Shown here one piece after another: positions 10,698-44,172 of a stretch of 64,000 bases of DNA (the first letter of the stretch is position 1; each line of letters opens with the position of its first letter). Below the pieces are notes generated by a model. The model saw only the letters and a list, made by a program, of their open reading frames with translations, made no database searches and was not told the DNA's origin. The stretch spans positions 3,038,001-3,102,000 of the forward strand of contig OZ176053.1 in assembly GCA_964247055.1 (NCBI GenBank), written 5' to 3'. A program made the translations under genes and the position numbers. The stretch is from Paragordius varius. Its lineage: Eukaryota > Animalia > Nematomorpha.

Positions 10698-13642
10698 ATG
10701 AATTCATATTTAACATTAATATTATCCTATATCATCCTTCTACATCTCATGAAAGGTAAAAGTTATTCTACAATTTTATTACCATATTAATTTGTTTTAG
10801 ATGATTATATCATTTTTAACATTAATAAAATGACGGTAGTTTCAGATGTCGAAAGGATGCGAATCTTGGAAACTATTCTCTAGTTTAAATTAGGAATGTT
10901 TTTACTTAGGGTTCTACTCTATACCTTGTCGGTTATCGAGGAATGATTTTAAACAGTAACTTTAATCGTGTTAAAATACAATTTTATGTTAGAAATTAAT
11001 TGCCAAAAGCATATATTTTTATTAATGCAAAATAGTACATTGATGAGAAATTGAGCCATATTTGGAGAAAAACATTATTTCTAAAATTTTTACATCAAAG
11101 ACAATGAAAAAATGGACTCTATATTATTTTTAGCCGGGTAATACAGGGGTCAATCACATGGGTGCTGCCTTCTAAGTTTATATTTGAATAGTTTTAGAGC
11201 AGTGTTACTCACCAAAAAAATTTGACGGGCCAAATAAAATATATTATTTTTTCGAGGGTAATGAACCTTATAATGTCAAATATTCCATAGCTATTTGACA
11301 CATATGCACATATTTACACTCGAAATCAGCACAATGATTTTTTTGCGGATCGCATGTAAATCCAGCTAAAAACTCGTTTTACACCATTTAAAAAATTAAA
11401 ATATTTCGTTAACATTTATTTTGATATTATCCAATAATTTTTGACAAGTTTTGCCTCATGATAGGCCAATCTTAATACGTCGTCCATATAATCATCGGTT
11501 AAGCGATTTCTGTAGGTATTCTTGACATACTTCATTCTTCAATATGCCGCCTCACACGTGTAAGTTGAAGGAAAAACAGTATTTGTCACATAGTGCCAAA
11601 ACTCTATTACATATCTTTCTTCCCCACGATTCTCCTAATTTAGCCTCCTGAAATCATTTTTAAGGTCTACCAATTCTTCAATGATATGCGCCTGTCAAAA
11701 CCGAAATGCTCAAGTTGCTTAATATTGGATATATCCATATGCCATGGATTTTCAACGAGTTTTAAGAAATTTTTAATATTTCCTAATTCTGAATTTCATC
11801 TCATTAGATAAAAATGTTAAATGATAACCTCCGCGGTAATGTCGCAAAGGTAGGCTAATAAAACCCACTGTTTATCACTATTTTTTCCTCGTCAAACCTT
11901 ATGTTATTATTTATAAATAATAGAATTTTATGCCTTAAAACAAAAAATCTATTTAATACTTTGGTAAGGCTAAGCCATCGCACAGCGGTGTACAAATATG
12001 GGCAAATTCACTGTGGATATCTTTAAGAAGGTTTTTGAATTTACGGCCGTTGAATTCTTTGCCACGGATGTGGTTAACTATATCCATAAACGTTTTATTA
12101 CGGAATTGAGTTCATCTTTTATACGCGAGACCAAGTTGCTGATGAATAAAGCAGTAAAAGAATAAAATATTTGGCAAATTATATTTTTTTAAGGGGAATA
12201 AATCCTTTGTTTATTCCAATGATAGAGGGACAGTCATCTGTGCAAAAAACCAATTTTTCCATAGATATGCCATTATTATCGAAAAAAATGCCAATTATTT
12301 CTAGGAAATTACTTCTTTTCGTGGTATTATTCATTGGTAAAAATAACTACTCGTTGATTATGTCGTTGCAAAAAACTATGAAGAGAGCACATTGAGATGT
12401 CTTTCCATATTGTATTATTTATAATTATGTGGTTCTTACATATAAGACAGGTAACAACATTTTTTAAAAACGACAAAAAAAATTTCTTCCTATTCTTTTT
12501 TAAAGGAGCGATTTTCATCGGATAATTTACGTTTTTTAGCATTAGATGTCATCCTTTTAATTTATGTTTAAATATTATATAATTTTTTTAAAAAATAGGA
12601 ATATATTTTGAATATGCTATAAAAAAACAGGACGAAATTTAATGATGTTGATTTGATAAATATTTTATGGAAATGAGTATCAGAAAATGATGTAAGATAG
12701 CAATGAAAAGAATATGCAAGTTTGAGTGAAAGGCTTGCTTTACAAAAAAGGAATGCAATAAAAATTTTGAAATAGAAAAGAAAATAAAAAACAGAAACTG
12801 AAACAACGTGTGCCAAATTTTTGAAATCATTTTAATGTAGGAAAATTTTTCTACTTTTCAAATTAGGTAAAAAATAAAAATTACCAAAATTAACTTTAAA
12901 GAAAATAAATTAATATTAAAATACGCGAAAATTTGCTTATGTGTATTCTAAAATTCATCAAAAAAATAATTTATGTATCAATTTGGTCACAGGGCAATTT
13001 TAAAACACTCTTAGGGCGCATGCGGCCCACGGGCCGCGGTTTGAGTATCACTGTTTTAGAGGGTAAATCAATTATTTTTTTCTATATTTTATAGTTAACA
13101 CTAGAAAATTAACAATAAATGCACGTTCTGATAATCAAAATATTATTGTATGCTGGACGTCCTATATTGGTACTCAAATCACTTATTCCTTAACAATGGA
13201 AAGATGTTATGAAAATGTCAAACCATGTTATACCGACACTCAGGTAAAAATCTCTTTTATTTCATATCTAATATGATATTTATATATATGACATGTTAAA
13301 CAAAATTTTTAAATTGTGTTGTTTAGAAAATCAATAACTATAATAACTGATTTTATCGATATAAATGGTTAAATTGATATAAACCTTTCTCATCTTGCAT
13401 AAAAAAACCAGCTGATGTGCCTTGTTATAAGTCGCAGTGACTACCAACAATATCCTTAGCATGTTAATATATTTTTTCAATATACAGAAAAATTTGTTTC
13501 ACGATAATTATGTTTGGAAATGAATTAAGATTACGGCCCCAACCCTGTTAATTTTCAATGGCTATTGACTAAAGGTTTTGCTTTTAGGGCAAACATTATT
13601 GAGTTTATATCGTCTTATGTATCCGAAATGGTTAACTCAAGT

Positions 13643-13680
<38 letters not shown>

Positions 13681-16600
13681 TGGCGTATTTAACATACGAC
13701 CTTAAAAATCTAATTTGAAAATAGCTCTTAACTAAAATTTTTGCACAAAGCTAATATCATTATTAATAAATCAATTTGGTCTGACAAGCATTCTGTTATA
13801 TAATAATAAGCCCCGTTATCTAATATGATGGCCTATTTGATATTTGTGATCCTTTACCACGATTGATTAATCAACCTCAATATATTATTCCTTAAATTAT
13901 AAATTACTAAAACATTACTAAATTCATATTGCAAAAGATTATTTAAAGTAAGTATACACTAGGATGCGGCCTTAACCATGTTTAATTTAAAGGATGGCTA
14001 CTAAATTTTAAACATTACTTTAAGCTATCAAAGATTGCTTCAAAGTTACGTTATTATTTTATGATGGCATATTTTTCAGACGTGGAGGCCAAAACAAGAG
14101 CAGTAGAGCGTTAATAACCTTAACCTAATGTTAGAAATAATTAACACCATTTTACAACTTTGGTTTCATAAGTGTTCCAAAATTGAATTGTAACGCATTT
14201 TACAGAGTGTAGATATCTCATAGCCGCTAATTTAAAAAACTCCGGACTATTGCCCTTATACCAGGGGTGCCTAAAATCATGATTGATATTACATGGTCTT
14301 ATAGCGGATCCGAAAAGTTTCGTTAAAGCCACGTTATCTTCAGAGGCGGCATAGCTTGCATTTCTAGCGCCTGGTGTATGAATCCGGGATGGCGCCCCTT
14401 CCCCCCTCCCTTACCCTTGCAACTTTGCATTTTAAACCGTGGTTATTACCACTCATAAATGGATGATTTTTTATCTATTATTTAAAAAAATAGCTTTAAA
14501 TACCTATTTTTATGAAATAAAATTTAAATTTTTCTAAATAGGGCTCACCTTTAACTATGGCGCCCGGTGCAGTGCATCAGCCTCCCTTTCCACCCCCTAG
14601 CTACGCTTCTGGTTATCTTCTTATGGTGATGTATTTTTTAGGGTAGCATAACTGGCAGCTTATTTTATAAACACGCGAATCGTCAAATTTTTTTCCATAA
14701 TATGGGAAACAGCTAAGCTCTTCATGCTTTATGGTCTCAAAGGGTGGAATTTTACTTAGCCACTATTTAAAATTAAAAGTGATGGGCTTGTTTTTTTCTT
14801 TTATTCTGAAAATTATTGTTACGTTTTTTCGGTAACAATTGGTTATTTTATTTCTACTTTTATTTAGATAATACCATTCAACTCAGAAAATTTTACATGT
14901 CACCAATACACCAAAGCTTTTAATGCCAACTATACATTTACCTTAACATATATGATCAAAGTTGAAGCTTTGGATAACACCTTATATACTAATATTTCCA
15001 CAGGTTCGTTTTTAAAATATAAAATTCAATCATATATATATTTAATTTAGAATTGTTTTATAAATTCTGTTTTGCATAAAGGGTATATATTCATATTTTA
15101 TTATAATTTTAAGCATATAAGAGCAACAGTTTTTGTATAGTTAAATATAAAATACGCTTTATACGTTGAAAAGCTGTTTTTAAGAACAACTCTTCTTTTA
15201 AAAAATTATAAAAATATATAACTTTTCGCAAATATTAATACAAGAAATATAACTCTTTAATTGTTTAATGTAAAAGTTTTTATTCTATCTAATACTATAA
15301 TTTCCACAAATATGAAAGAAATTTTTTAAGATGGGCTCAGCATAACTTAATACCTATTAATATAATTTCTAATTATGTTTTAGCTTTCCAACAAATAAAT
15401 TTCGTCGATTATACATCATTATACAATGATTGGTGCAAAATGGACAATTTGTCAGGAATCGTTTCACAGTTGCTCATCGATAACCTTTATAAGGCCAAGT
15501 ATTAATTTTTCACCTATTACGATAAGATTTTATAGCATGCATTCATTTTATAAGTTATTTTTAAATTATTTGCAACTTAAATTTGATTTTCGAGTTATAA
15601 TGTGATCTTTTAAATACATTTTTCAGCAAATTTACTCTTTTTGGCTACTTTCATTTGTTTTTTCTATATATAAATCCCTACCTTAAAATTTGTCCCAATT
15701 TAAGACTCAGTTAATCACACTTTTAAAATTTCCCTGTTTTCAGTTTGTTTAAAAATATGTTAAATAATTTTATTTTTAATAGTATATTTTTAAATTTATT
15801 TATTAGATATAAAATTAATATACCATTGCACTTCAAGAGTTTCCTTGAGCACTTCAAGTTGGTCCTAACAAGTTCGTCTTAAAACCATGTTGGTCATTAA
15901 TACCTAATTTTTGCATGTATATTTTCATTTTATTATTTTTTAACCTGGTTTTATTTATTATATATTTTTTTATTTAAAATAAATTATTTATTGAAAAACC
16001 ACTTTTTTTCAAACAAGTTTTTCAAATTTCACAATAACTTATAAATGTTTTATATACGGTTTTTGAATGATTATAAATTGAAAATTAAAAGTCTATGTTA
16101 ACCAACTTCAAGTGTTCAAGGCTTGAAGTTAAAACGGTATATGAACTACTATTATTACATATTTTAACTTAAACTATTTGTGGTACTTAAAATAAAAGGC
16201 ATTTTTTAATTTTTGCATAAAAAATGTGAATTATTATATAATTTTATAAATTTAGTTCAAGAAGAGTTTAAGCCATAAATTAATATTTTTCGCCAAATTT
16301 TAAGGCACCAAATCCCAGATTATGCAGAACTTATGGTAAGAAAAAACACGAGAATAAATTTTACCTAAATATATACAGTAAAAATTTTTATACGGAAAAC
16401 GTTAAATTAAAAAGACAAATACTTTTTTTCTTAAAGACAATCATTCTTTTAAATCTTGATTTATTAAAATAAAACTAATTGTTTTTAAAAAGTAATGTAT
16501 ATTGATAACATAGCCAATTATATATTTTGCAAAGTAAATGATTAAAAGAAAAATTAAGGTTTTGAAAAAAGTATAGTTGTCTTTTTTAAAATTTGTCGTT

Positions 16601-18365
16601 ATGTTTTTAGGTTATCCTCGTATATTTTCAATTTTTACTCTAATGTAATAATTTTTTAATAATTTTTATTCATGCTGAGGAGTAAATTAATTCGCATTTA
16701 GTGTGATTAGTATCATTGTATTACACTTTTAAAGTATTAGTGTAATTAAGTTGCTACGCCTTAAATAGTTATTAAATATTTGTATACCTAAAATGTATAA
16801 CAAAACCTAAATATTTATCCCAGACACTTACCAAATGAGTAGTAACCTCCGAAATAAGTCAAATAATAGCGCATAAATGTACCACAGAGTGTTGCAAAAA
16901 ACTTAGTTATATATTATATATATGCATATGCCTTTATTCAAGCAGTGTTCATGTGTTAATATATTATTTATATGCAGGCCGTCGGATTTTTAAAGCCAAA
17001 AATGCGGTCCCCAAAGCTATTTCTATAGGGCACCCCTGCTTTAATGAGTTAATCTAAATCTTTTTAGGCAATACTATTGTATTGAATCATATACATTGAT
17101 ATAATTAGGAATGTCAAAATATCAAAGCAAAATAACCATATTTATGGATTCGTTAAAATGAACCTTACCCAAAATCAGCCACATATTATGTCATATACTC
17201 CCAACGAAGATTTGTTTAAATCGTTATTAAAAATGGATAATTTCCAATATTATTGGTTACATGTAAGTTTTATCATATTACAAATTGTATCATATAATAT
17301 ATATATATGGTAAAAAATTAATTACCCCCAACATTTATTATAACCATAATTTTTTAATTACTGTTTCATACCTCAAAATTTGAAAATACACTAAATATTA
17401 TTGCAATTAAAAAAATTCATGCCTCAGAACATCATGGTATTACTATTGATCATAACGTTTATAACCTTTACAAACTTATTAATGTAAAAAGGGATATTTT
17501 ATTACTTTATAAATTATTGGAAATTGTCAGGACGGTAAAGTCGATAAGAGCGTCTATCACGAATATATTTGATAAGTAAACAGGACTACTTTAATGTCCA
17601 CGTTTAAGCGGTTTATTTATATGATTTTATAATTGTATAATTGGGCTCAAAATTTAAATACCTATTTGAACTAACACATTGATTTCCTTGTGCCTCAACA
17701 TCTCAAATATTTGTTATAGAGTCGCTATGTGTTGAAATTCAACAAGGAATTACGGTTAAACATTTGTTATATTACCGACGATGATTTTCTGAAAGAAATT
17801 TGTGAAGAACGTACGTTTGGAAATCCACGGGTATTTATTTATGAGAAATATACCTTTTAGTTTAATACCCCACAGCGATTTAAATAAAAATAATGTTAAG
17901 TTTCGATAATGCTGTGCAACTTTAAAAAAAATGCATTCTATAGCCTTTTGTTTAATGTTAATCTAATCTAACCATTCGTTAAATATTTTTCCGTTTTAGT
18001 TGAATTGCTAAAAAACTGGCAAATATATTTTGGTTGAAAAATAGAATAATTGTAACAACCTTGGATGTAATAGCAGAATTATTCAATTCAAATATAAAAT
18101 GTAATTTATTTAATAGTACCGGTTGGATTTATTTAAATTTTAGACTATAAAACGTGAAAAATCGCTGTTATATATATATATATATTATAAATAGGGCAAG
18201 AATTCGATTGAAGTTGACGTGGTAGACCATTTAATTTCACTGCCTGATGTTAAATATTATTTTCGAAACAAATTTCTTCTAAATATGACAACAACAAATG
18301 ATAAACTGATTTTGGAAACTCTCAATGAAAATAATTATGTGTCATTTACTGTATCGACATGTTAA
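10698..18365 (+). CDS. Gene A: putative secreted protein of unknown family, 260 aa, 6 exons
   Basis: Exons 10698-10755, 13095-13243, 14868-15003, 15384-15498, 17109-17262, 18195-18365 (783 nt, all GT-AG, phases 1/0/1/2/0). Hydrophobic N-terminus MNSYLTLILSYIILLHLMK; ends ...NNYVSFTVSTC*. Exons 2-6 match gene B with conserved boundaries and synonymous changes (exon 2: 39/49 aa identical). Confidence 0.85.
11200..13053 (-). mobile_element. hAT (Buster/SPIN-like) internal-deletion derivative in gene A intron 1
   Basis: TIRs cagtgttactca / tgagtatcactg; perfect 8-bp TSD ttttagag (11192-11199, 13054-13061). Minus-strand transposase remnants YTAVRWLSLTKVLNRFF and VFPSTYTCEAAY*RMKYVKNTYRNRLTDD (hAT dimerisation region). 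Confidence 0.9.
13646..13678. repeat. (TA)n microsatellite (others at about 27740-27770, 43903-43930, 44966-44990)
   Basis: Seen directly as uninterrupted TA runs. Confidence 0.9.
14341..14611. mobile_element. hAT-type MITE (271 bp) in gene A intron 2
   Basis: TIR cagaggcg / cgcttctg; perfect 8-bp TSD gttatctt (14333-14340, 14612-14619). Confidence 0.85.
15821..16139. mobile_element. MITE/foldback family 1 copy in gene A intron 4
   Basis: Starts TACCATTGCACTTCAAGAG; degenerate right end cttgaagttaaaacggta; TA flanks. Confidence 0.75.
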
Positions 18366-18615
18366 CTATACATCAATTCATCTAAGATTATAACATAATT
18401 TAATAGCTTATAAACAATAGCAAATATTTTATTGTTACTTATTTAATTAGTGATGTGATACGAATTGATTATGCTAAATAAATTAAATTGATAAATTGTT
18501 TGAGTGATATCTTTTAGCATCATTGCCGAATATACCACACAATATTTTAAACAGAAATATCTCTAAAAACTTACTCCGCTTCTCTTTCCAAAATTTTGAC
18601 CATTTTAATTCCGGG

Positions 18616-20343
18616 CAGTGGCGCACAGAGGGGGGGCAGTGGGGTGCATCATGCCCCGGCGCCGTTATTTAGGGTCGCCTAAATGATTTACTTTAATTAC
18701 ATTTTTTATGCAAAAATAATAACAATTCCAAGTAAGATTTTTCAATTAACGTAATAATCCTTAAATAATTAAATTATATAAATGAGATCAAGGGCAAACT
18801 TTATGCTAAAAACAAATTTCATGTAGGTATTCCCTTTAACATGTTCCAACTTATTTTTTCGCTTAAAACACGTTTCTTTATCAAGCACATATTGTTAATT
18901 CTTGTATTGCCTTTAATTAAATTATTTTAACTTCTTTCTCTGTTTAAAATCTTATATCTTATTCTTATAATTTAATATTGCATTTTTATTTTAGTCATAT
19001 TCAATTTCAAAACACAATTTTATTTATTTAAATCCCCAAGATCATTCCATCTCTAACAAGGTAGATTTTTTATTATTAACACTTGGATACAACACATTCA
19101 TTTCAGTCTTTCGATTCAAATTGGGGTATTGATACCCCAGGCCTGTTTATAAATAATTAAAAAAATATGAAATGTATTGAAACCATGGCAAAAATTTGAA
19201 TATTTATAACATTATTGAACCGAAATATAAAAATTTCATTCAAAAATACTTGATATTACTAATTTTTAGGTAAAACATCATGGTTTTAGTCAACATGACA
19301 TGTGAGCATTAGCCAAATTCAAAATTAATACAAAAGAAACCATTTTTCTGTTTCTATCAATGTTAGATGTGATTTAAATGAAAAATTTACTTCTATTTAG
19401 CTTTTATTAAATTAACACGATATTTTCCAAAAATGTTGTGATTTAAAAATGGCATCGAAATAGATATGGAAATTTTTTTTCAACCAAATTTTATTTGGAT
19501 ATTTCGGCTTATTTATATAATTTTGATTAGGATAGAAGAAATTTATTTAAATTGGGACCGTTTCTTTCAGTAGTTTTTAAAAAAATTTTTTTATTTATTT
19601 ATAGGCTGGAGTATTTAGATACCCCAATTCGAATCGAAGTGTTAATACAGACTTGTATTTTTATAATTATCTTCATTTTCATCAGATATCAATGCCTAAA
19701 CTCAGCGGTTACGCAAAAAGGATACGAGAAATCCAGAAAATAAAATAAGAATGAGTATGAAATCTTATTCAAATATCTGACCATAAAATTGAAAAAAAAT
19801 GTATGCAACACAAACATAACGGTACCCCTTAATAATAATAACTTAAATACACCTGAAACCCTAGTTATTGCTCCAATAAATAGAAATGAGAAAACCACTA
19901 ATATAACATTAGTAATTCCAAGCGCTAAATATATAAAGTTTAAGCACAGAAATGATTATTCGTGGATCTCAAGGATTTAAATTTAAATGCAATCTCTTTA
20001 CAAAAAATCACCGTTTCGACGTGTCGGTCAAAAAGAAGGATTTGAAGTTGAGAGGTCTTGGTTTTTATATTCACCAAAAACAGATATGCGTATTGTTTTT
20101 GTTGCCTACTTTTTGGATGATCTAATTCTTAACCATCATCTTTTATAACTACGCATAGTTTTAATAAATGGAGGAAAAAGATAAACTAATCTATCATGAA
20201 AATAGCCTCAATCATCGCAAAGCATTTAGTACTTGGAAAGAGGCAGAAAGAAGATTGCTAAAATTGGCTTTCAAAAAAAGGAAGGGGGAGGGGGCGCCAT
20301 AACAGTTTTATGTCCGGGGCGCCGCAAATGCTTTAAGCCACTG
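18616..20343 (+). mobile_element. hAT deletion derivative with an N-terminal zinc-finger transposase remnant
   Basis: TIR cagtggc / gccactg; TSD attccggg / attccggt (7 of 8). Remnants MPKLSGYAKR, ERSWFLYSPKTD, frameshifted YCFCCLLF and HRKAFSTWKEAERRL resemble the TTF-type zinc-finger region of hAT transposases. Confidence 0.8.
19108..19639. mobile_element. TIR MITE nested in the 18616-20343 element
   Basis: Ends cttcgattcaaattggggtat / ataccccaattcgaatcgaag; an inverted sister copy lies at about 21171-21697. Confidence 0.75.
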
Positions 20344-22881: not shown

Positions 22882-25800
22882 TTAACATGTCGATACAATG
22901 AATGATACATAATTATTTTCATAGAGAGTTTCTAAAACCAGATTTTCGTTTGTCGTTGTCATATTTAGTAAGAATTTGTCTTGATATTTAATATCGGGCA
23001 ATGATATTAAATGATCTAATACGTTAAGTCGAATCGAATTCTCTTCCTATTTATAATATACATATAATACTTTATACATATCTGTATTTATATATTTTTT
23101 TGAAACAGACAACCATACTTTTTAAAACTAGATATTTCCATAGAGCAGTAGTACCTAACCTTTTTTGTTCACGCCACACCTAATCTTACCATTATTTTCT
23201 AACCGTAATACCGGTGACAATTGATAATTCGCACCTAAATTCTTCAATATTTTACTAGTTTTATTTAATTAAATTCTCCAAATTTTTGCGCCTTCCTTAG
23301 TTTTTTCTACGCCCCCCTTTTGGGCACCACTGCCATCATGTATTCTTTGCTAGATAGTGATTTGACACAAATTCCAAAAGGTTACGGATAAAGGTTTGAG
23401 AATAGGATTATAAACTATTTTTTAATTTTTAAAAGAAAAGGCTAAAAGGTCTTATACATATAATGTAACCTAATAGTATGAAATTTAAGTTGATCAATAG
23501 AAATCTCTAAGGTGTATACCCTAGTTAATAAATACCTTTGCATTTCCATAAGTACGTTCTTCACAAGTTTCTTTTAGAAAATCATCATCAGTAAAATAAC
23601 AAATATTTAACCGTAATTCTCGATTGAATTTCAAAACATATCGACCCTATAATATATTAATATGTATAGTTTTTTTAACCTGCTTGCAGAAAAGGTTAAG
23701 AGAAAGTTACGCGTTAAAAATCAAGCTAATTTTATCACATTATAAAATTGTAACAATTAATGTTTGATATAAAATTCAATATAAGCCCTTTTAAATTCGG
23801 AGTGTTACTGTCATAAAAATTTCAGTTATTATTGAACTACGCATTTAAAAAACTTCTATTACATCCAATTGGCTGATTACCGTCGAAACTTGATATTTTA
23901 TTAATGATTAGATTCATAACATCGATGAAGCTTTGTAAGAAAAAAATTTAATAAATTTTTTTCATGAGATAGCTTATGACCAGCTTATTCATTTGCCGTA
24001 AAATTTTTTATTTGTTTACGACCTAGTTTTTGATATATTGAGAGAAAATTAAAATCGGGCAAAACTTAAAAGTAAGGTTATTAAGGATAATTCAAAAAAT
24101 AAGGATGAAAGTTGACATATTATGGTTTTTAGGAGATATTTTCAATAAAATGGCCTAAAATCATATAAATAGGGTTTCTATAAAATCTCAGTTCAAAAGA
24201 TGGCGTTTTTCACACACTTAAAAGTCAAAAAAGTTTTATGAAACTATATTAAAATATTTTTTTTATTATTTACAAGCTAAACTCACTATTAAATTCTTAA
24301 CATTCATATTATATTCAGTAAAAAATTCTATATAAATATGCAAAAAATATTGTTTTTTATATTTTCATTTACAGGTTTATACTGTATAATTTTTTAAAAA
24401 TAGGATTTAAAAGTAGCGAAATATCAACCAATCCGTCCAAATCCCTGTAACATGTTTGTTTTAACAGAAATTAACAGTTTTACTGGGATATGTACGGATA
24501 TTTGGTTGATTTTCCTATACTATTGATTCTTATTTTGTATGAATTATATACTTTATAACTCCCACTCATGTAAGATTCCAAAATAAACAGTATAAATTTT
24601 TTAACAACTATAAACCAGATGACAAAAAAATGAAATAATAAAAAACAGCATTTTTTAGTTTATTTTTGATATAGATGTTTTTTTTACTAAATAAAATATA
24701 ATTGTTAAGATTATAGTGAGTTTGTAAATAATTAATGAAAATTATTTTAATTTAGTTTCATAATTTTTTTTTGACTTTTAAGTGTCGTGAAAGAAAACGC
24801 CATCTTTTGTACTGAGATTTTGCAGACACCCTATTTATATGATTTAGGTTATTTATATATAGAAAATGTCTCCTAAAATGATAATCAATAATAATATCTC
24901 AACTTTTATCATTATTTTTTGAATTATCCTTCATTTTCACTTTTTACCCGATTTCGATTTCCTCTTAATATTTCGAAAACTAGGTCGTCGACAAATTAAA
25001 AGTTTTGCGGCAAATAAATGGTCATAAGCTATCTCATAAAAAAAAGTTTTTTTGTGAAAAAAATTAACCCTATTTTTTACACACATATATAAATGTTTCT
25101 AATATGAAATTGCCATATGTTTATATGTATTTCCATTTAGTTAAAATACGAAAACAGCATTCAAATTATAAGTAAAATAAAAAGGTTTACGATAAATTAT
25201 TATTTATTTTCCATATAAGCTAAAATCCAGTATACACTTTAAAAATATTTACCTCTAACCGATAATCTTGAATATTATCGTATGTTAAAACGGCTTTAAA
25301 CAAATCTTCGTTGGGAGCATATGACAAAAGATGTGGCTGATTATTGGTAAGGTTCATTTTAACCATTCCATAAATAAGATTATTTGGTCTTGATACTTTG
25401 ACATGCCTAGGTTAATTAATATATAAAATTTGTGATAAAAAATGCAATTCGCTCAGGTTTTTTGCAATGTTTTGTAGAATAAGTTTTTAACTCTATTAAA
25501 TGTGATAATTATAATTTAACTTTTAAAGAGTATGGGAATTTCATACTAATTCCAACCAATATCGCATTATATTAAAACATTTTTGAATAATAATTTTTTT
25601 TTAAATAAGTTTTTTAAAATGTATCTTAATATCAAAGCATTCTCCCATATATTTCAAAAAAGTTGGAAAAAATCTTGTACATGGTCAAGAGGGCGCAACA
25701 TGCCACATATTTGGAAATATCGCCCCTTCTAAGAAAGTATTTTGAAATGAATTATCTTTTTAATAATTAAAAAAATGTAGAATGCTTATCAAGTAACTAA

Positions 25801-30700: not shown

Positions 30701-33700
30701 AAAATTTTCATATAAAATTTTTAAGTGTTACCGTTTCCATCATACTTCACTACAAAAAAAACTGCTTCATTGATTTTGTTATATCTTATGCGCAAGATAT
30801 CAATTTTACACTTTTTAATGTCAAATAACAAATAAAATTTTTAGCGCGCGATCTCGACCTTTTCCCCCTCATTTTAAGAGAGCTTGTCCATAGACGCCAG
30901 AAATTTGATACTTTCGGAGGCTAATCTAAAATTTATTTTCCCAGAGTTAAAACGATTAAAAATTATTTTACATTTTGCAATTTTCACATGTTTGTTGGAA
31001 TTATATATTTGATAAAAAAAACTTGTTGAAATTTCGGTATTAAATGTGTTTTCAAACGCTTTCATTTTAATCATATATGTCAGGGTGAATGTATAGTTTG
31101 CATTGTAAGCGTTAACGTATTGGTGACATGTATGATTATCTGGATTGAATGGAATCATCTAAAATATAACAAAGATATGGTTGATGGAATTAATACCCGA
31201 TAATAACCCAAAATAGGTAAAAGGGAATCGTTTATTATATGTAGGAACCGAAGTAAGTTATGTGATTGGTTTTTATTTAATTTGCATACCAATATTTAGA
31301 ACTTAACTATTTTGGAAATAAATTTAATAGCCATCTCTTTTTTATTAATTAAACAAATCAATCCAGCATATATAAACTGAAATCCTACCCTCATACATCC
31401 AAATTTCTATATTTGAGCCTACTCACAAATTAGTATGTCGAAGAACTATTATTAGTCTCTTCTTTTTATTTTATCTTTTTAATCTAGCTGGTCCCCTGCC
31501 TAGGGCTGACAACGATGATGAAAAAAGTGATGGGGTCCAAAATCTACATTCATCAATTTTTGTCTCTATTCTAATCACATATTATTAAAATCCATAATGA
31601 GTTCAAGGAAACATAAAATCATTGATTTGTATATATATTTCTAAAATCACGCCAAGATAAACTTATTTATGCAAGTTAGAATTTGATTAAGAGTTGGAAT
31701 CAAGGTCCAATATAGATAATAAACAATAAAAAAATAAAAACATTTTTATACCTGAGTATCGCTATAACATGGTTTGACATTTTCAAAACATCTTTCCATT
31801 GTTAAGGAATAAGTGACTTGAGCTGTCAAATAGGACGTCCAGCATACAATTATGTTATGATTATCAGAACGCGCATTTATCGTTAATTGTGAACTATTAA
31901 CTATAGGTTAGATATTACTTACCCACTTAATTGTTAGCCAGTCAATATAGTAGTATATGATATAATACAAATTTTTTTTATTATTAAATGAACAAATTTA
32001 ATGTTTTAACATAAGGAAAAATTGTTCATTTCACACATTTGTTTTTTATCCATACGCTACTGTGTTGCCAATTGCCCAAAAATAATGCAAAGTGGCTAAC
32101 AATAAAGTGGCTTATATTTACAGTATGCATCTCAATAAATGTTCAGTAATTTTATTGCCAGTCGAATAACATAAATGGTTTATCCAATGCGTAAAATACT
32201 GACTCACGAAATTATTTCGTAGTACACATATGAAAGAGGATTGACGTAAAATAGGCTTTAATTTGATGGATATTTTGTAATGTTAAATTTTGAGAATATT
32301 ATAGCAATTTATGTTAACATTTGTAATATTTTTGTTACGTATTTAGATGCGGAATTGTGTGGGTTTCTATCTTAGATAAATTATTAAATAGTAAAATATG
32401 TATTTTAAGATATTTTATGTTAATTATTCTTAAATTTAATAATAAATATCAACATGCTAAATATCTGTATTAATCAATATTGGTATTATAATTTTATATA
32501 GTTGTTATTACTAATTAAAAAAACACAGGTAAATATATATTTGTGAAAATTTAAGCAGATTTAAGATTTTTGTCTTTTATGTTGTGCATTGTTAATATTT
32601 TTAAGTATTTCAGACATTTTAATCAGGTAATTCGGTTTTTAAATTTAGTCAAATTTATTTTTTTGTTTTTTTTATGTAACATTGTTAATTGTAATCAATT
32701 ACTACATATTTTGGACATTTTAATAAATACAGATAAAAATTGCGGTTTTTAACAAATTTAGTAAAAATTTAGTTTTTTTTGTTTTTTTAGGTTTTGCATT
32801 GTTAATTGTAATTAATTACTACATATTTTGATTATTATAAATAGAGGTAAAAATTGCGGTTTTTAACAAATTTAGTAAAAATTGAATTTTTTTGTTTTTT
32901 TTATTTAACATTGTTAATTGTAATTAATTACTACATATTTTGGACATTTTAATAATTACAGATGAAAATGGCGGTTCTTAACAAATTTCAAATTTAACAT
33001 TTTTTGTATTTTGTATCATTGTTATTAATTACTAAATATTTTGGACATCTAAAAAACAGGGGAAATTGCGGTTTTTAATAAATTAGTAAAATTTTTAATT
33101 TTTTGTTCAACCTTGCTAATTTATTAATTACTATATATTTTTTATACATTGATATATACAGGTAAATATTACGATGATTTGCGGTTTTTTAAATTTTTAG
33201 GAAAATTATTTTTTTGTTTTACATTGATAACTAACATACAAATATAGTTATATCTGAGCATACAGGTAAAAGCGTATGTTACGGTTTTAGGTTTGACATT
33301 TTATTTTCCAAATCCAACGATTTATATTTTAACAAACACCTTATGTCACCAAAGGAAAAAATGATCAAGATATATAAAACATCTTTTAAAGTATCTGAAT
33401 ATCGCCAAATATAAATAAATTTATTTAAATTATAAATGTATAATTATACAAAATATTCATAATATTATGTTTAAAATTAGCATTCTTCTTATTGATATAA
33501 TACAGGTAATTTGTTTCTAATATTGATATACGATGCGGTGTGCGCTCATGATAATCTTATCTTAGATTGAAGAATATGAGATGCAAAAAATAATTAAATG
33601 CAGATTGAATATTTATCACCATCATTTTCTGGGTAGATTCTATCAACTAAAATATAAAATAGAAAGGTATTTATTAATATATTAGAAAATTGATACCTGG

Positions 33701-36700
33701 ATTCTTGAAGTATTTTCAACATAATTTTAAATATTGGGGGCTAAAACATTCAAAGTTTGAAAGGGAACTAAATAAGGTTGACTTGGCTTTTTAACAACTA
33801 AATTTGCAAAAAATATTTTCTTCATGATAAAAAAATTCTAAAATGATACTTTATGTTTTTGCGTTTTCGTTCTACTAATTAAACTATAAATATGAAAAGG
33901 CTTATATGATTTCACCAATGACGTCAAATAGAAAATAGAAACAAATATTTTTATTCAAAAATACAACAGCCCTCCAAAAACGTAACAGGCAACACTAACA
34001 TTGTTCGCTTTGGTGAAGAATAGTTTTTCATATTTATAGTTTAGATAGTAGAACGAAAACCCAAAAACATAAAGTATCATTTTTGAATTTTTTATCATGA
34101 AGAAAATATTTTTTGCAAATTTAGTTGTTAAAAAGCCAAGTCAAACTTATCTAGTTCCCTTTCAAACTTTGAATGTTTTGGCCCCCAATATTTAAAATTA
34201 TGTTGAAAATACTTCAAGAATCCAGGTATCAATTTTCTAATATATTAATAAATACCTTTCTATTTTATATTTTAGTTGATAGAATCAACCCAGAAAATGA
34301 TGGTGATTGAATTTTCAATCTGCATTTAATTATTTTTTGCTCATATTCTTCAATCTAAGATAAGATCATCATGAACGCACACCGCATCGTATATCAATAT
34401 TAGAAACAAATTACCTGTATTAATATCAATAAGAAGAATGCTAATTTTAAACATAATATTATGAATATTTTGTATAATTATACATTTAAAATTTAAATAA
34501 ATTTATTTATATTGGCGATATACAGATACTTTAAAAGATGTTTTATATATCTTGATCATTTTTTCAATCTTTGGTGACATAAGGTGTTTGTTAAAATATA
34601 CATCGTTGGATTTGGAAAATTAAATGTCAGACCTAAAACCGTAACATGCGTTTTTACCGGTATGCTCAGATATAACTATATTTGTATATTACAATGTAAA
34701 ACAAAAAAAATAATTTTCCTAAAAATATAACCCAATTCATAGTAATATTTACCTGTATACATCAATGTATAAAAAATATATAGTAATTAATAAATTAGCA
34801 AGGTTGAACAAAAAATTAAAAATTTTACTAATTTATTAAAAACCGCAATTTTCCCCTGTTTTTTAAATGTCCAAAATATTTATTAATTAATAACAATGAT
34901 ACAAAATACAAAAATTGTTAAAGTTGAAATTTGTTAAAAACCGCCATTTTCACCTGTAATTATTAAAATGTCCAAAATATATAGTAATTAATTACAATTA
35001 ACAATGTCAAAGAAAAAAAACAAAAAAAATTCAATTTTTACTAAATTTATTAAAAACCGCAATTTTTACCTCTATTTATAATAATGTCCAAAATATGTAG
35101 TAATTAATTACAATTAACAATGCAAAACCTAAAAAAACAAAAAAAAACTAAATTTTTACAAAATTTGTTAAAAACCGCGATTTTTACTTGTATTTATAAT
35201 AATGTCCAAAATATGTAGTAATAAATTACAATTAACAATGCAAAACCTAACAAAATTTTTACTAAATTTATTAAAAACCGTAATTTTTACCTATATTTAT
35301 TAAAATGTCGAAAATATGTAGTAATTAATTACTATTAACAATGTTACATAAAAAAACAGAAAAAATTAAATTTGACTAAATTTAAAAACCAAATATCTAC
35401 CTGATTAAAATGTCTGAAATACTTAAAAATTATTAATAATTAACAATGCAAAACATAAAAGACAAAAATCTACTTAAATTACAAATATATATTTATTTTA
35501 ATTAGTAATAACAACTATATAAAATTATAATACCAAAATTAATTATATTTAGCATGATGAAAAATATTTATTATTAAATTTAAGAATAATTAACATAAAA
35601 TATCTTAAAATACGTATTTTACTATTTATTAATTTATCAAAGATACAGTATGCATTTTAATGTCTGTTAAGTAATTTTATTGCCTGCCAAATAACATAAA
35701 TGGTTTATCAAAAGCGTAAAATACTGACCCACGAAATTATTTCGTAGTACACATATGAAAGAAGATTGACGTGAGAATTAACATAGGCTTTAATTTGATG
35801 GATATTTTGTAATGTTAAATTTTGGGAATATTATAGCAATTTATGTTAACATTTGTAATATTGTTGTTACGTATTTAGATGCGGAATTTTGTGGGTTTTT
35901 ATCTTTAATAAATTAATAAATAGTAAAATACGTATTTTAAGATATTTTATGTTAATTATTCCTAAATTTAATAATAAATATTTTTCAACATGCTAAATAC
36001 CTGTATTAATTAATCTTGGTATTATAATTTTATATAGTTGTTAATACTAATTAAAAAAACACAGGTAAATATATATTTGTGAAAATTTAAGTAGATTTTT
36101 GTCTTTTATGTTTTGCATTATTTTTATCAGGTAAAAATTGCGGTTTTTAATAAATTTCCTAAAAATTTAGTTTTTTTTTGTTTTTTAGGTTTTGCATTGT
36201 TAGTTGTAATTAATTACTACATATTTTGGACATTATAATAAATAGAGGTAAAAATTGCGGTAAAAATTTAGTTTTTTAGGTTTTGCATTGTTAATTGTAA
36301 TTAACTACTACATATTTTGGACATTTTAATAATTACAGGTAAAAATTGCGGTTTTTAACAAATTTAGTAAAAATTTTGTTTTTTTAGGTTTTGCATTGTT
36401 AATTGTAATTAACTACTACATATTTTGGACATTTTAATAATTACAGGTAAAAATTGCGGTTTTTAACAAATTCAGTAAAAATTTAGTTTTTTTTGTTTTT
36501 TTTTGGTTTTGCATTGTTAATTGTAACTAACTACTTCATATTTTGGACATTATAATAATTACAAAATTTAGTAAAAAGTTAATTTTTTTGTTTTAGAGGA
36601 TTTTCATTGTTAATTGTAATTAATTAATTTTGGACATTTCAATTAATAAAGGTAAAAAATGAGGTTGTTTTTATATTTAATAAAATTTAATATTTTCTTG

Positions 36701-39700
36701 TTTTTTTATTTAATATTGTTAATTGTAATTAATTACTACATATTTGGAAATTTTAATAAATACAGGTGAAAATGGCGGTTTTTAACAAATTTCAAATGTA
36801 ACATTTTTTGTATCTTGTATCATTGTTATTTAATTAATTATTAAATATTTTGGACATTTAAAAAACTTGTGTAAATTGCGGTTTTTATTAAATTAGTAAA
36901 TTTTATTTTTTGTTCAACCTTGCTAATTTATTTATCACTATATATTTGTGATACATTGATATATACAGGTAAAAATTACTATGACTTGCGGTTTTTTGAA
37001 TTTTTTAAAATATTTTTTTTACATTGATAACTTATATAATAAATATAGTTTACATATCTGAGTAGGTAAAAATGCATGTTACGGTTTTATGTTTGACATT
37101 TTATTTTCCATCAACTATTTATATTTTAACAAACAACGTATGTCACCAAAGATTGAAAATAAGATCAAGATATATAAAACATCTTTTAAAGTATCTGAAT
37201 ATGGCCAAATATAAATAAATTTATTTAAATTATAAATGTATAATTATACAAAATATTCATATTATGTTTGAAATTAACATTCTTCTTATTGATATTAATA
37301 CAAGTAATTTGTTTATATAAATGATGTACGATGCGGTGTGCGTTCATGATGATCATATGGATTGAAGAATAGTATAAGATGTAGATAATCCTGAAAATTT
37401 TAATCACCATCATTTTTCAGGTAGATTCTATCACCTAAAATATAAGATAATTGATATATTAGAAAATTGATACCTGGATTAAATATTGGGGGAAACATTC
37501 ATAGTTTGAAAGGGAACTCAAAAGGTTGACTTGGCTTTTTAACAACTAAATTTGCAAAAAAATATTTTCTTCATGATAAAATATTCAAAAATGATACTTT
37601 ATGTTTTTTTTCGTTCTACCATCCTAAACTATAAATATGAAAAGGCTTATATGATTTCACCATACCAATGACGTCAAATAGAAAATAGAAACAAATAATT
37701 TTTTTCAAAAGCTTGGAATGCAACAGCACTCCAAAAGCAGGCAACACTTGTTTGCTTTGGTGAAGAATAATTTTTTATATTTATAGTTTAGGATGGTAAA
37801 ACGAAAACGTAAAATAAGGTATCATTTTTGAATTTTTTATCATGAAGAAAATATTTTTTTGCAAATTTAGTTGTTAAAAAGCCAAGTCAACCTTTTGAGT
37901 TCCCTTTCAAACTATGAATGTTTCCCCCAATACAGGTATCAATTTTCTAATATATCAATTATCTTATATTTTAGGTGATAGAATCTACCTGAAAAATGAT
38001 GGTGATTAAAATTTTAAGGATTATCTACATCTTATACTATTCTTCAATCCATATGATCATCATGAACGCACACCGCATCGTACATCATTTATATTAACAA
38101 ATTACCTGTATTAATATCAATAAGAAGAATGTTAATTTCAAACATAATATGAATATTTTGTATAATTATACATTTATAATTTAAATAAATTTATTTATAT
38201 TTGGCCATATTCAGATACTTTAAAAGATGTTTTATATATCTTGATCTTATTTTCAATCTTTGGTGACATACGTTGTTTGTTAAAATATAAATAGTTGATG
38301 GAAAATAAAATGTCAAACATAAAACCGTAACATGCATTTTTACCTACTCAGATATGTTAACTATATTTATTATATAAGTTATCAATGTAAAAAAAATATT
38401 TTAAAAAATTCAAAAAACCGCAAGTCATAGTAATTTTTACCTGTATATATCAATGTATCACAAATATATAGTGATAAATAAATTAGCAAGGTTGAACAAA
38501 AAATAAAATTTACTAATTTAATAAAAACCGCAATTTACACAAGTTTTTTAAATGTCCAAAATATTTAATAATTAATTAAATAACAATGATACAAGATACA
38601 AAAAATGTTACATTTGAAATTTGTTAAAAACCGCCATTTTCACCTGTATTTATTAAAATTTCCAAATATGTAGTAATTAATTACAATTAACAATATTAAA
38701 TAAAAAAACAAGAAAATATTAAATTTTATTAAATATAAAAACAACCTCATTTTTTACCTTTATTAATTGAAGTGTCCAAAATTAATTAATTACAATTAAC
38801 AATGAAAATCCTCTAAAACAAAAAAATTAACTTTTTACTAAATTTTGTAATTATTATAATGTCCAAAATATGAAGTAGTTAGTTACAATTAACAATGCAA
38901 AACCAAAAAAAAACAAAAAAAACTAAATTTATACTGAATTTGTTAAAAACCGCAATTTTTACCTGTAATTATTAAAATGTCCAAAATATGTAGTAGTTAA
39001 TTACAATTAACAATGCAAAACCTAAAAATACAAAAAAAAAACAAAATTTTTACTAAATTTGTTAAAAACCGCAATTTTTACCTGTAATTATTAAAATGTC
39101 CAAAATATGTAGTAGTTAATTACAATTAACAATGCAAAACCTAAAAAACTAAATTTTTAGTAATTATTAAAAACCGCAATTTTTACCTCTATTTATTATA
39201 ATGTCCAAAATATGTAGTAATTAATTACAACTAACAATGCAAAACCTAAAAAACAAAAAAAAACTAAATTTTTAGGAAATTTGTTAAAAACCGCCATTTT
39301 CACCTGTATTTATTAAAATTTCCAAATATGTAGTAATTAATTACAATTAACAATATTAAATAAAAAAACAAGAAAATATTAAATTTTATTAAATATAAAA
39401 ACAACCTCATTTTTTACCTTTATTAATTGAAGTGTCCAAAATTAATTAATTACAATTAACAATGAAAATCCTCTAAAACAAAAAAATTAACTTTTTACTA
39501 AATTTTGTAATTATTATAATGTCCAAAATATGAAGTAGTTAGTTACAATTAACAATGCAAAACCAAAAAAAAACAAAAAAAACTAAATTTATACTGAATT
39601 TGTTAAAAACCGCAATTTTTACCTGTAATTATTAAAATGTCCAAAATATGTAGTAGTTAATTACAATTAACAATGCAAAACCTAAAAATACAAAAAAAAA

Positions 39701-42700
39701 ACAAAATTTTTACTAAATTTGTTAAAAACCGCAATTTTTACCTGTAATTATTAAAATGTCCAAAATATGTAGTAGTTAATTACAATTAACAATGCAAAAC
39801 CTAAAAAACTAAATTTTTAGTAATTATTAAAAACCGCAATTTTTACCTCTATTTATTATAATGTCCAAAATATGTAGTAATTAATTACAACTAACAATGC
39901 AAAACCTAAAAAACAAAAAAAAACTAAATTTTTAGGAAATTTATTAAAAACCGCAATTTTTACCTGATAAAAATAATGCAAAACATAAAAGACAAAAATC
40001 TACTTAAATTTTCACAAATATATATTTACCTGTGTTTTTTTAATTAGTAATAACAACTATATAAAATTATAATACCAAGATTAATTAATACAGGTATTTA
40101 GCATGTTGAAAAATATTTATTATTAAATTTAGGAATAATTAACATAAAATATCTTAAAATACGTATTTTACTATTTATTAATTTATTAAAGATAAAAACC
40201 CACAAAATTCCGCATCTAAATACGTAACAACAATATTACAAATGTTAACATAAATTGCTATAATATTCCCAAAATTTAACATTACAAAATATCCATCAAA
40301 TTAAAGCCTATGTTAATTCTCACGTCAATCTTCTTTCATATGTGTACTACGAAATAATTTCGTGGGTCAGTATTTTACGCTTTTGATAAACCATTTATGT
40401 TATTTGGCAGGCAATAAAATTACTTAACAGACATTAAAATGCATACTGTAAAAACCCACACAATTCCGCATCTAAATACGTAACAACAATATTACAAATG
40501 TTAACATAAATTGCTATAATATTCTCAAAATTTAACATTACAAAATATCCATCAAATTAAAGCCTATGTTAATTTTCACGTCAATCCTCTTTCATATGTG
40601 TACTACGAAATACGTGAGTCAGTATTTTACGCATTGGATAAACCATTTATGTTATTCGACTGGCAATAAAATTACTGAACATACATTAAAATGCATACTG
40701 TAGTATAAAAAAATAATATTGCTATTGTTTATAATTTGTTAGTAATATTCAGCACTAATATGATGGACTCTTTATATAAAAGAAAAACATAAATTAAATT
40801 TAAAACCATTACGAATGAGCCGTTAACCAAATTTGTCCATGTAAACGAGCCATGTGAATAAGCCGGCTCAAAATATATTTTATAAAATTTATATATTTCT
40901 CTTGGTTTTTAAGTTAATCTGTCAATTTTCCATTTCAACTTAGCCATAAACCAATCAAACCCTCCGCCCTAAAACTGCTTTTTATAGCACTGATATTTTT
41001 TGAATTTCTTGATTTATTTATTTTGAATATAAAGATATGCAAATGTTTAAACTACTATGAAATTTTTGTCGGTATTATATGGCTCAGTCCTTGAGACAAT
41101 ATAAATTTGTGGGCCTTATTTGGTGTATATCACTGCATAAAAATTTAAGCTATTTTAGCCACTTATTCACTAAAATGCCTTGTGTGTGCAAAAAAGAGGG
41201 TTATTTTTTTAGCAAATTTTTTATTCGTAAAATAGCTTATGACCAGCTAATTCATTTGCCGCAAAAATTTTAATTTGTTGACCACCTAGTTTTTGAAATA
41301 TTGAGAGAAAATCGAAATCGAAATGAAAATTTAGGATAATTAAATAAATATGATAAAAGTTGAGATATTATGGTTTATTATTATTTTAGGATATTTTCAG
41401 TATATAAATGGCCTAAAATCATATAGTTAGGACTTCTATAAAATCTCAGTTCAAAAGATTTTCTATTAATACACTTAAAAGACAAAAAATATTTTAAGAA
41501 ACTTTTAATTATTTACTCAAACTCACTATTAAAATCTTAATATTCATATTTTATAAGGTAAAAAAACTTACATATCAAAATAAAACTAATAAACATAGTT
41601 TTTATTTTTTTTCTCGATTTATTACGGTATAAAAAATTTACTATTTTATTTTGTTCACATAAGCGTAAATTAAAAAATATGTATATTTCAAAATAAATTT
41701 ACAACCAGTAGAAAATCAACCAAAAATCCGTACATATCCCAGTAAAAATATTAATTTATGTTAAAGCAAACTTTTTACAGGGATTTATAAGGATTTTGGG
41801 TTGACATTCCACTACATAAATCCTATTTTGCATAAAATTTATAGTTTATAATTCCCAGTCATGTAAGATTTCAAAATAAAACAGTATAATTATTTATACA
41901 TTCATAAACCAGATGACAATAAAATAAAAAATAAAAAATATTTATTATTTTGATATATAAGTTTTTTACTGAATAAAATATTAATGTTAAGATTTTAATA
42001 ATGAGTTTAGCTAGTAAATAATTAAAAATTATTTTAACATAGTTAAAAAATTTTGTCTTTTAAGTACGTTGCAGTTTTTTGATCTGAATTTTTATAGAAC
42101 CCTAACTATATGATTTCAGGCTATTTAAAACTTGTAAATATATGCTAAAAGATAAAAAACCAATATATCTCAAGTTTTATCATTATTTATATTATCCTAA
42201 ATTATCCTTAAATTTTATTTTTGCCCGATTTTGATTTTCTCTCAATATTTCAAAAACTAGGTCGTCTGCTATTAATTTTTGCGGAAAATAAATTGGCTGG
42301 TCATTAGCTATATACCATTTTTCATGCAAAAACATCATTTTTTCAAGCAAACGCACCATTTTTTCAAGCAAACGCAACATTTTTTCAAGCAAAGGCAACA
42401 ATTTTTCAAGCAAATGCAACATTTTTTCAAGCAAAGACAACATTTTTTCAAGCAAACGCAACATTTTTTCAAGCAAACGCAACATTTTTTCAACCAAATG
42501 CAACATTTTTTCAACCAAATACAACATTTTTTCATCCAAACGCAACATTTTTTCAACCAAAGACAACATTTTTTCAAGCAAAAACAACACTTTTTTTTAA
42601 TATTACAAAGAATTACTATTTATTGTTAATTATAAATTATTAATTAAATTTTAAGTTAATGTAATTTATTTTTAGCGTTGAATTATGATTTTTATCGTTT

Positions 42701-44172
42701 TACCATCAATTTTTGATGGTAAAATTGATTTTCAAACATTTTGATTTTGCCCATAAATTGCCGTATTTATATTATTTATATTTTTCTTTTACAATTCGCC
42801 TAATCAAATTATTTAATTTTCAATTCAAGAGTGTCTTTGAAAGTTTAAAGTTGTACTTCACTTCAAGTTGGTCCTTTGACTTTTTTGTTTTGTTTTTAAC
42901 ATTTATTAATTAAATCGAAAATAATTTATTTATTTTATTGTTTTAACCTATTTTCTATTATTTATCATATATTTTAAATCGATATCAACTTTTAATCTTT
43001 GAGAAACCGTATATAAATATCAAATAATTTTAGATATTTATAAGACGAAAAAAAATATATGAGTTTTATGGGTTATTAAAAAATTTTCATTAAAAACATT
43101 AAAATTAATAATTTTATTCCTATTAATAAAAATATTTTGAAACAAAAAAGTGGTTTTTCAATAAAATTTTTTATTTTTAAATGGATTAATATATAATAAA
43201 TAAAGAAAATTGGGTTAATAAATAATAATATTAAAAAATAAATGCAAAAATTAGGGTAAAACAAAATTTATATATTTTAAGGACCAACTTAAAGAGTATA
43301 AAGACCAACTTGAAATGTTCAAGGACCAACTTGAAGTGTTCAAAGACACTCAATAAGTGCAAATTAAATAATTTGATTAGGCGAATTGTAAAAGAAAAAT
43401 ATAAATAATATAAATACGGCAATTTATGGGCAAAATCAAAATGTTTGAAAATCAATTTTACCATCAAAAATTGATGGTAAAACGATAAAAATCATAATTC
43501 AACGCTAAAAATAAATTACATTAACTTAAAATTTAATTAATAATTTATAATTAACAATAAATGGTAATTCTTTGTAATATTAAAAAAAGTGTTGTTTTTG
43601 CTTGAAAAAATGTTGTCTTTGGTTGAAAAAATGTTGCGTTTGGATGAAAAAATGTTGTATTTGGTTGAAAAAATGTTGCATTTGGTTGAAAAAATGTTGC
43701 GTTTGCTTGAAAAAATGTTGCGTTTGCTTGAAAAAATGTTGTCTTTGCTTGAAAAAATGTTGCATTTGCTTGAAAAATTGTTGCCTTTGCTTGAAAAAAT
43801 GTTGCGTTTGCTTGAAAAAATGGTGCGTTTGCTTGAAAAAATGATGTTTTTGCATGAAAAATGGTATATCATAAAATAAAATTTTTTGTTATTTTTGCCC
43901 ATAGTATATATATATATATATATATATATATCTGTCGGTAACCGAAAACATTTATATTTTATATAAACTGTTGTTGAATAAGTCCCGAAAAATATTCTTT
44001 GATATCCTAGAACTTAGATCAATTTTTATTTAAAAATATATCAATCAACCTAAAACAATCGATATCGTATGAATTAAATAAATTTGTTGAGCATATTTTT
44101 ACCTTTTGTGGCATGTAGATATAGATGAATATGATAAGATAATAATAATGCCAGATATATTTTTGAATTCAT
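22882..44172 (-). CDS. Gene B: putative secreted protein of unknown family, 262 aa, 6 exons; paralog of gene A
   Basis: Exons 44172-44103, 31900-31752, 31158-31023, 29233-29119, 25406-25253, 23046-22882 (789 nt, GT-AG). Exons 2-5 have exactly the lengths of gene A exons (149/136/115/154). N-terminus MNSKIYLALLLSYHIHLYLHATK; ends ...NNYVSFIVSTC*. Exon 1 is assigned across a 12.2-kb intron by phase and by homology to gene C and gene A. Confidence 0.8.
23146..23332. mobile_element. Short hAT-like MITE
   Basis: Imperfect TIR cagtagtacctaa / ttgggcaccactg; partial 8-bp flank match ccatagag / ccatcatg. Confidence 0.55.
23940..25085. mobile_element. About 1.1-kb palindromic non-autonomous element in gene B intron 5
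   Basis: Arms of about 550 bp are imperfect reverse complements; homologous to the host element at 41181-43900. Confidence 0.75.
27008..27360. mobile_element. MITE/foldback family 2 (TACCATTTAC termini, cttgaacaattcaaattcacc 21-mers)
   Basis: Perfect termini with TA flanks; further copies at 53547-53815 and about 54970-55224. Confidence 0.85.
27487..28113. mobile_element. Non-autonomous hAT-like element in gene B intron 4
   Basis: Left end ggggtgtccaacacaaatggc also occurs at about 46556 and, reversed, at about 54585-54605; internal homology to 7400-9010. Confidence 0.6.
35646..40448. mobile_element. Giant foldback element 2 (4.8 kb) of the same family, inserted in the right arm of element 1
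   Basis: Same CAGTATGCAT termini; TA duplicated (35644-35645, 40449-40450). Removing it restores ...aagataaaaacccac, the family arm sequence. Arms 35646-37640 and 37770-40448. Confidence 0.9.
38611..39930. repeat. 660-bp tandem duplication in the right arm of element 2
   Basis: The sequence at 38621 (ttgttaaaaaccgccattttcacc...) recurs at 39281 and the two blocks stay in register for about 660 nt. Confidence 0.85.
41181..43900. mobile_element. Palindromic host element (sister of 23940-25085) carrying nested insertions
   Basis: 41215-41800 and 41800-42310 are inverted arms; the right arm is interrupted at 42311 and resumes after 43868. Confidence 0.7.
42313..43866. mobile_element. Foldback element family 3: about 510-bp near-perfect inverted arms with 21-bp tandem repeats (ttttcaagcaaacgcaacatt)
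   Basis: TACCATTT / AAATGGTA termini with TA TSD; about 13 21-mers per arm; a family-1 MITE occupies the centre (about 42820-43355). Confidence 0.9.

Follow-up and report, generated by a model that had tools for sequence, protein, structure and literature searches.

The 64,000-nucleotide (nt) stretch of the Paragordius varius genome analyzed here (the window: contig OZ176053.1, positions 3,038,001 to 3,102,000 of the forward strand) contains, between its positions 10698 and 44172, two mirror-image series of short exons, and the question raised by this locus is whether these series are working genes and, if so, what kind of protein they specify. A first reading of the DNA, made from its letters and a list of open reading frames (ORFs) and hereafter called the sequence-only reading, had proposed a convergent pair of orphan secreted-protein genes, referred to below as A and B. 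We favor, with a probability of roughly 0.6, the view that A and B are functional members of a five-gene, taxon-restricted and probably secreted protein family that would have grown by local duplication.

Comparison of 10-21 kb with 21-45 kb of the window by BLASTN returned a collinear, mirrored series of matches (A side, B side, identity):

10642-10819 / 44224-44030: 67%, exon 1 plus its upstream block
13090-13262 / 31905-31732: 87.5%
14863-15027 / 31163-30998: 78%
15364-15509 / 29252-29108: 82%
17090-17266 / 25425-25249: 81%
17714-17839 / 23652-23527: 86%
18175-18496 / 23066-22738: 75%

Six of the seven pairs (13090 to 18496 in A) had E-values of 1e-31 to 1e-55, and the weak pair at exon 1 had an E-value of only 2.9e-06. 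Between matching exons the two sides could not be aligned by BLASTN, except at one repeat. Anchor searches and pairwise alignments placed GT-AG at all exon boundaries of both genes, the alignments showed identity dropping exactly at the AG/ and /GT borders, and introns 1 to 6 have the same phases in A and B (1, 0, 1, 2, 0 and 0). The result is a tail-to-tail pair of intron-rich, collinear mirror-image genes with the following structures:

Gene A, 10698-18365, plus strand: seven exons, GT-AG introns, 297 amino acids (aa)
A exon 1, 10698..10755, plus strand: ATG, 19-codon hydrophobic leader and 1 base; phase 1 donor AAAG/GTAAAA; aligns with the leaders of B and of paralogs C and D
A exon 2, 13095..13243, plus strand: 149 nt; three invariant Cys (VCW, RC, KPC)
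A exon 3, 14868..15003, plus strand: 136 nt; invariant Cys (TCH) and the motif NYTFTLTY
A exon 4, 15384..15498, plus strand: 115 nt; invariant DWCK and an NLS sequon
A exon 5, 17109..17262, plus strand: 154 nt
A exon 6, 17720..17830, plus strand: 111 nt, phase 0/0; two invariant Cys (ICY, xC)
A exon 7, 18195..18365, plus strand: 56 codons and TAA; STC at the end
Gene B, 44172-22882, minus strand: seven exons, GT-AG introns, 299 aa
B exon 1, 44103..44172, minus strand: ATG at 44172, 23-codon leader and 1 base
B intron 1, 31901..44102, minus strand: 12.2 kb, full of nested palindromes and inverted tandem-repeat arrays
B exon 2, 31752..31900, minus strand: from BLASTN and alignment, like B exons 3 to 7
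B exon 3, 31023..31158, minus strand
B exon 4, 29119..29233, minus strand
B exon 5, 25253..25406, minus strand
B exon 6, 23536..23646, minus strand: absent from the model of the sequence-only reading
B exon 7, 22882..23046, minus strand: 54 codons and TAA

The inverted homologous exon pairs with equal phases and conserved splice sites described in the sequence-only reading were thus borne out, and the five internal exon starts that it gave (13095/31900, 14868/31158, 15384/29233, 17109/25406 and 18195/23046) are exact acceptor sites. Its listed exons and ATGs (10698 in A, 44172 in B) also stand, but the model was incomplete, with six exons in place of seven: the pair 17720-17830 / 23646-23536, encoding 37 residues at 86% DNA identity, had been missed. 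Because exon 6 is phase symmetric (0/0), that model nevertheless remained in frame. The genes had further been called invisible to the ORF track, which holds for ORFs of at least 90 aa except at exon 3 of B, which is seen through read-through into its intron.

Several features of these exons point to selection on the encoded protein. The Nei-Gojobori ratio of nonsynonymous to synonymous divergence (dN/dS) between A and B, a comparison suggested by the sequence-only reading, was 0.36, and among the four clustered family members introduced below it ranged from 0.27 to 0.51 at dS values of 0.10-0.45. Identity between A and B at codon positions 1, 2 and 3 was 0.84, 0.886 and 0.74, the third position being the most variable. 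Exons are 86-89% identical, and intron 6, the A/B intron pair most similar in size, aligned only about 2 standard deviations better than shuffled sequences. In the alignment of the whole five-gene family, 109 of the 281 columns are invariant, eight of these being Cys. These patterns indicate that A and B are genuine protein-coding genes under purifying selection, in agreement with the claim of purifying selection made earlier. Conservation extends to both flanks of the coding region, and an AATAAA signal is kept 114-127 nt past the stop codon in A, B and paralog D:

10548..10697, plus strand: proximal promoter block of about 150 nt 5' of the ATG of gene A, conserved in A, B, C and D, with the TATA-like TATAATATAAA just before the ATG
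18366..18496, plus strand: 3' untranslated region (UTR) of gene A, about 130 nt, conserved in A, B and D, with AATAAA about 114 nt past the stop

Paralogs first came to light when the exons of A were compared by tBLASTn with the 50 kb that precede the window and with 30 kb from contig 3. Extending the search to the whole assembly (110.6 Mb, 44 contigs), with individual exons and five-sequence profiles as queries, gave exactly five complete paralogs, A to E, which answers the question of family size that the sequence-only reading had posed. Four of them (A-D) lie inside about 87 kb of one contig and E lies on another (the prefixes G000:C4 and G000:C3 denote the contig of the window and contig 3, respectively):

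Paralog C, minus strand, head-to-head with A: exon 1 at 247-178 of the window, remainder upstream of the window at G000:C4:3019009-3037710
Paralog D, minus strand: upstream of the window on the same contig
Paralog E, plus strand: G000:C3:10273827-10278963

All 34 exons identified over the five genes are open and have canonical splice sites, with no stop and no frameshift. At the amino acid level, A, B and C/D are 72-77% identical to one another, C and D share 89%, and E has 51-54% identity with the others. In paralog E, exons 6 and 7 are fused through loss of the intron that separates them in the four contig 4 paralogs, which leaves one 94-codon open exon (G000:C3:10278679-10278960), with 5 extra in-frame codons at the former junction; this fusion indicates that exon 6 is constitutive coding sequence. 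Neither sequence nor profile searches of the assembly returned a retrocopy or an intron-poor full-length paralog. Between D and C (window coordinates -29731 to -26228, or about 3008300-3011800 on G000:C4) lie two short, isolated exon-like fragments, one similar to exon 3 (E 8e-05) and the other to exon 6 (E 1.7e-06, 56% identity), which may be what is left of a sixth gene of the family after decay. The last intron of C is about 10 kb long (G000:C4:3019170-3029259), and its counterparts in A, B and D span 0.4-2 kb.

With this family in hand, the convergent pair of the sequence-only reading keeps its tail-to-tail arrangement and loses its status as a separate unit, A and B being two of five paralogs and not sisters. 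Origin of the two as sisters in a recent palindromic duplication was considered and rejected: dS is 0.45 between A and B and 0.37-0.38 between A and C or D, and A does not pair with B in the tree. Because the tree with E as outgroup leaves A, B and (C,D) as a trichotomy (bootstrap 39), A and B are, as judged from their divergence, cluster members that happen to converge and no special palindromic pair.

The predicted precursors of A and B are 297-299 aa long. As the sequence-only reading had noted, they begin with a hydrophobic leader; exon 1 carries this leader alone and is the sole hydrophobic segment by Kyte-Doolittle analysis (9-residue maxima of 2.0-3.1 in exon 1; 15-residue windows of at most 1.23 in the other exons of A-D). 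The leaders of B, C and D have a Lys-containing start, a hydrophobic core of 9-11 residues and a common ...LHA-TK end; the leader of A, shorter by 4 residues, departs more from the canonical form. At the C-terminus there is neither a KDEL-type signal nor a hydrophobic tail, and the chain ends in STC. In place of the six conserved Cys counted previously, the five-gene alignment gives eight, two of which come from the missed exon 6. Net charge varies from -8 to +8 among the paralogs. Exon pairs 2+3, 4+5 and 6+7 encode 90-95 residues each, and this regularity suggests three domain-sized modules.

From this architecture we infer the following course for the protein. The exon 1 leader would serve as a putative signal peptide into the secretory pathway, and the mature chain (about 275 aa) would be released as a soluble extracellular protein, because it has no further hydrophobic segment, KDEL-type end or hydrophobic C-terminal tail. 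Four disulfides could be built from the eight invariant Cys, N-glycosylation is possible, and the first module (exons 2+3) has an alternation pattern like that of a beta-sandwich. To judge by this class of protein, the role might be extracellular binding or a lineage-specific structure, which is a guess. Duplication within the locus, both tandem and inverted, would have expanded the family.

A number of observations weigh against A and B being functional members of a secreted family, and they bear on the genes, the leader and the mature chain. On the side of the genes, C has no conserved AATAAA downstream of its stop, and exon 1 of E was looked for and not identified. One could accordingly view the copies as unexpressed relics, that is, as young pseudogenes whose similarity reflects gene conversion and not selection on a protein. 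The missing poly(A) signal and 10-kb last intron of C fit such a view, as do the abundance of repeats and palindromes in this genome and exon 5, where the proportion of nonsynonymous differences between A and B (pN 0.19) is no lower than that of synonymous ones (pS 0.16). Against it, however, stand the open frames and intact splice sites of every exon identified, at dS of up to 0.45 in the cluster, the excess of variation at the third codon position, and paralog E, which on another contig and at about 52% identity still has 8 of 8 Cys and open exons. Gene conversion would, moreover, leave unexplained why conservation is confined to exons and carries a codon-position signature, and we consider decay of these genes most improbable.

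On the side of the leader, the hydrophobic regions are short (9-11 residues), and that of A has no basic n-region and, by eye, no Ala-X-Ala-like site. Such leaders might act as uncleaved signal anchors, yielding a type II membrane protein, or might carry no targeting signal at all, yielding an intracellular protein; in A, no basic residue precedes the hydrophobic core and positions -1 and -3 hold no small residues, and in B, C and D, His and Tyr occur in and after the core. A core of 9-11 residues is nevertheless shorter than a typical membrane span requires, the even number of invariant Cys suits an oxidising extracellular environment, and in B, C and D the leader has a plausible common end at ...LHA/TK. 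A membrane-anchored or intracellular product is therefore improbable in our estimation, and secretion is the preferred reading.

As to the mature chain, the N-glycosylation sequons reported in the sequence-only reading are present and mostly conserved (five positions are common to A-D and three to all five genes), but they are weak evidence, with 6-9 per protein compared with about 5 by a rough chance estimate at ~11% Asn. Exon-versus-exon profile-profile comparison with hhalign gave only a weak match of exon 6 to exon 7 (p = 0.013) and so left the modules unsupported; internal repeats, or three homologous modules, were rejected on the same result. AlphaFold2 applied to exons 6+7 of E (94 aa) gave an unusable model (pLDDT 40) that contained strands only.

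No protein family had been recognized for A and B in the sequence-only reading, and none emerged from searches of Pfam, the PDB, protein sequences, profile words, contig sets or the ESM Atlas with exon-sized queries. These queries were single exons or pieces of 37-94 aa, the 94-aa piece being exons 6+7 of E; for exons 3-5 the coverage comprised Pfam, and for exons 3 and 5 also the PDB, and the contig sets consisted of bacterial/archaeal genomes, viral contigs and metagenome contigs. Pfam hmmscan with each exon (E up to 10) and with the 94-aa piece returned two chance-level rows only. PDB profile and sequence searches with exons 2, 3, 5 and 6+7 returned nothing or rows with E of at least 0.2. 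Exon 2 had no match in a profile word search, nor in the bacterial/archaeal genomes, the viral contigs or the metagenome contigs. Exhaustive phmmer (HMMER) with the 94-aa piece against 1.84 billion representative proteins gave two matches (E 1.6e-05 and 2.9e-04), to the bacterial proteins P0001 and P0002. Both were set aside as spurious: they are long repetitive proteins whose scores are summed over 7-10 short repeats, P0002 having cadherin and BACON domains and P0001 only incoherent Pfam matches. In the ESM Atlas, the best neighbors of the exon 6+7 piece were concanavalin A (ConA)-like/laminin-G proteins, at a score of 0.84 with 81 of 256 features shared; this is chance level, since one third of shuffled proteins reached 0.84, and a second Atlas query came back empty. 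Within the collections searched, the family has no relative at the sensitivity that 37-94-aa pieces permit, as is common in a phylum that has been studied little, and it may be taxon-restricted.

Short queries leave room for a different account, in which A and B belong to a highly diverged known extracellular family, for example with fibronectin type III/immunoglobulin (FN3/Ig)-like modules of a receptor-ectodomain or adhesion type, whose kinship is hidden because every query was a 37-94-aa piece. The sequence-only reading had likened the first half of the proteins loosely to an FN3/Ig beta-sandwich. Exons 2+3 resemble FN3/Ig-like modules (PF00041 and its clan) in their 94-95 residues and strand-like alternation: NIxVCWT, TYSLT and NYTFTLTYM would fit beta-sandwich strands B, C and F, with a Trp in the putative B strand and a Tyr-x-Phe/Tyr-x-Leu in the putative F strand, and a phase 1-1 exon module in an extracellular context would also suit this class. 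They differ in having four Cys, an unusual number in FN3, and in that no single exon matched an FN3, Ig or LamG model in Pfam at E up to 10, each exon being half of a putative domain. ConA-like lectin/laminin G domains (PF02210, PF13385) are the closest language-model neighbors of exons 6+7, for which the poor AlphaFold2 model likewise gave strands only. That lead is weak, however: the score lies at chance level, there is no Pfam match, and the 94-aa piece compares with domains of about 130-180 aa. The chance-level PDB rows and the two repeat-inflated bacterial matches of the phmmer search also speak against a hidden known family, which we regard as a real but doubtful possibility; a taxon-restricted family remains our preference.

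Leucine-rich repeats of the Cys-containing type in exons 5-7 were likewise rejected. This type consists of tandem 24-29-residue LxxLxLxxC/N units, whereas the candidate units here are 40-58 residues apart, a string like L-x-L-x-I-C-x-I-T-D occurs, among exons 5-7, in exon 6 only, Pfam gave no match to such repeats, and profile comparison between the exons gave no significant score.

Clustered taxon-restricted families of secreted, cysteine-rich glycoproteins exist in parasitic worms. The genes described here resemble them in the leader on its own exon, the even number of invariant Cys, local duplication in tandem and inverted arrangement, moderate dN/dS and, at the sensitivity of exon queries, the lack of homologs outside the lineage; they differ in that the searches connected them by sequence with none of the named families. 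More speculatively, the proteins might represent a new fold or domain combination from the horsehair-worm lineage that is secreted at the parasite-host interface, for example by the parasitic larva in its insect, and binds a host molecule. We consider this a long shot; if true, the family would be a candidate source of effectors that help the parasite to exploit its host or to manipulate its behaviour.

What is gained is a corrected seven-exon model and a complete list of five genes with coordinates. The genes of this hairworm are poorly annotated, ORF-based tracks overlook genes of this kind entirely in its AT-rich genome with long introns, and in a parasite that manipulates its host, the secreted families peculiar to its lineage are natural places to look for players in host interaction or cuticle biology. 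Assemblies exist for Acutogordius, Nectonema and Paragordius, and published hairworm genome studies deal with Gordionus montsenyensis, with Chordodes and with a comparison of Mermithidae and Nematomorpha. Taxon-restricted secreted families turn up in nearly every newly sequenced animal genome, and orphan families of this sort are so common whenever a phylum is first sequenced that this one would not surprise a specialist. We regard the work as solid gene finding in which the evidence points to no unusual mechanism yet.

The surroundings of the genes are rich in repeats. The G+C content of the window is about 20-35%, and its retrotransposon ORFs with apurinic endonuclease and reverse transcriptase (APE/RT) domains mark it as coming from an animal:

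4127-6381, minus strand: fragmented APE/RT copy between the divergent genes C and A
57749-60942, plus strand: APE/RT copy with ORFs of 732 and 323 aa, beside thioredoxin-reductase-like exons

A dispersed non-coding repeat of about 570 nt occurs at 19075-19647 and 21166-21726, with inverted ends (19110-19166 versus 19585-19638). At least 9 copies, 63-85% identical and in both orientations, were found in the 144 kb examined (including contig 3), several of them in introns of C and D. An exon or UTR was rejected as an explanation for this block, given the lack of an open frame, the dispersed copies and the inverted ends; it looks like a repeat of the miniature inverted-repeat transposable element (MITE) kind.

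Intron 1 of B contains nested near-perfect palindromes at 32121-40700, with arms of 1121 nt (99%; 36360-37480 / 37929-39049) and of 618 nt (100%; 35644-36261 / 39833-40450). The same intron holds two inverted arrays of a 21-nt tandem repeat (42192-42629 and 43537-43902) whose 288-nt arms are 100% complementary, and these arrays yield spurious repeat ORFs of 90-130 aa on both strands.

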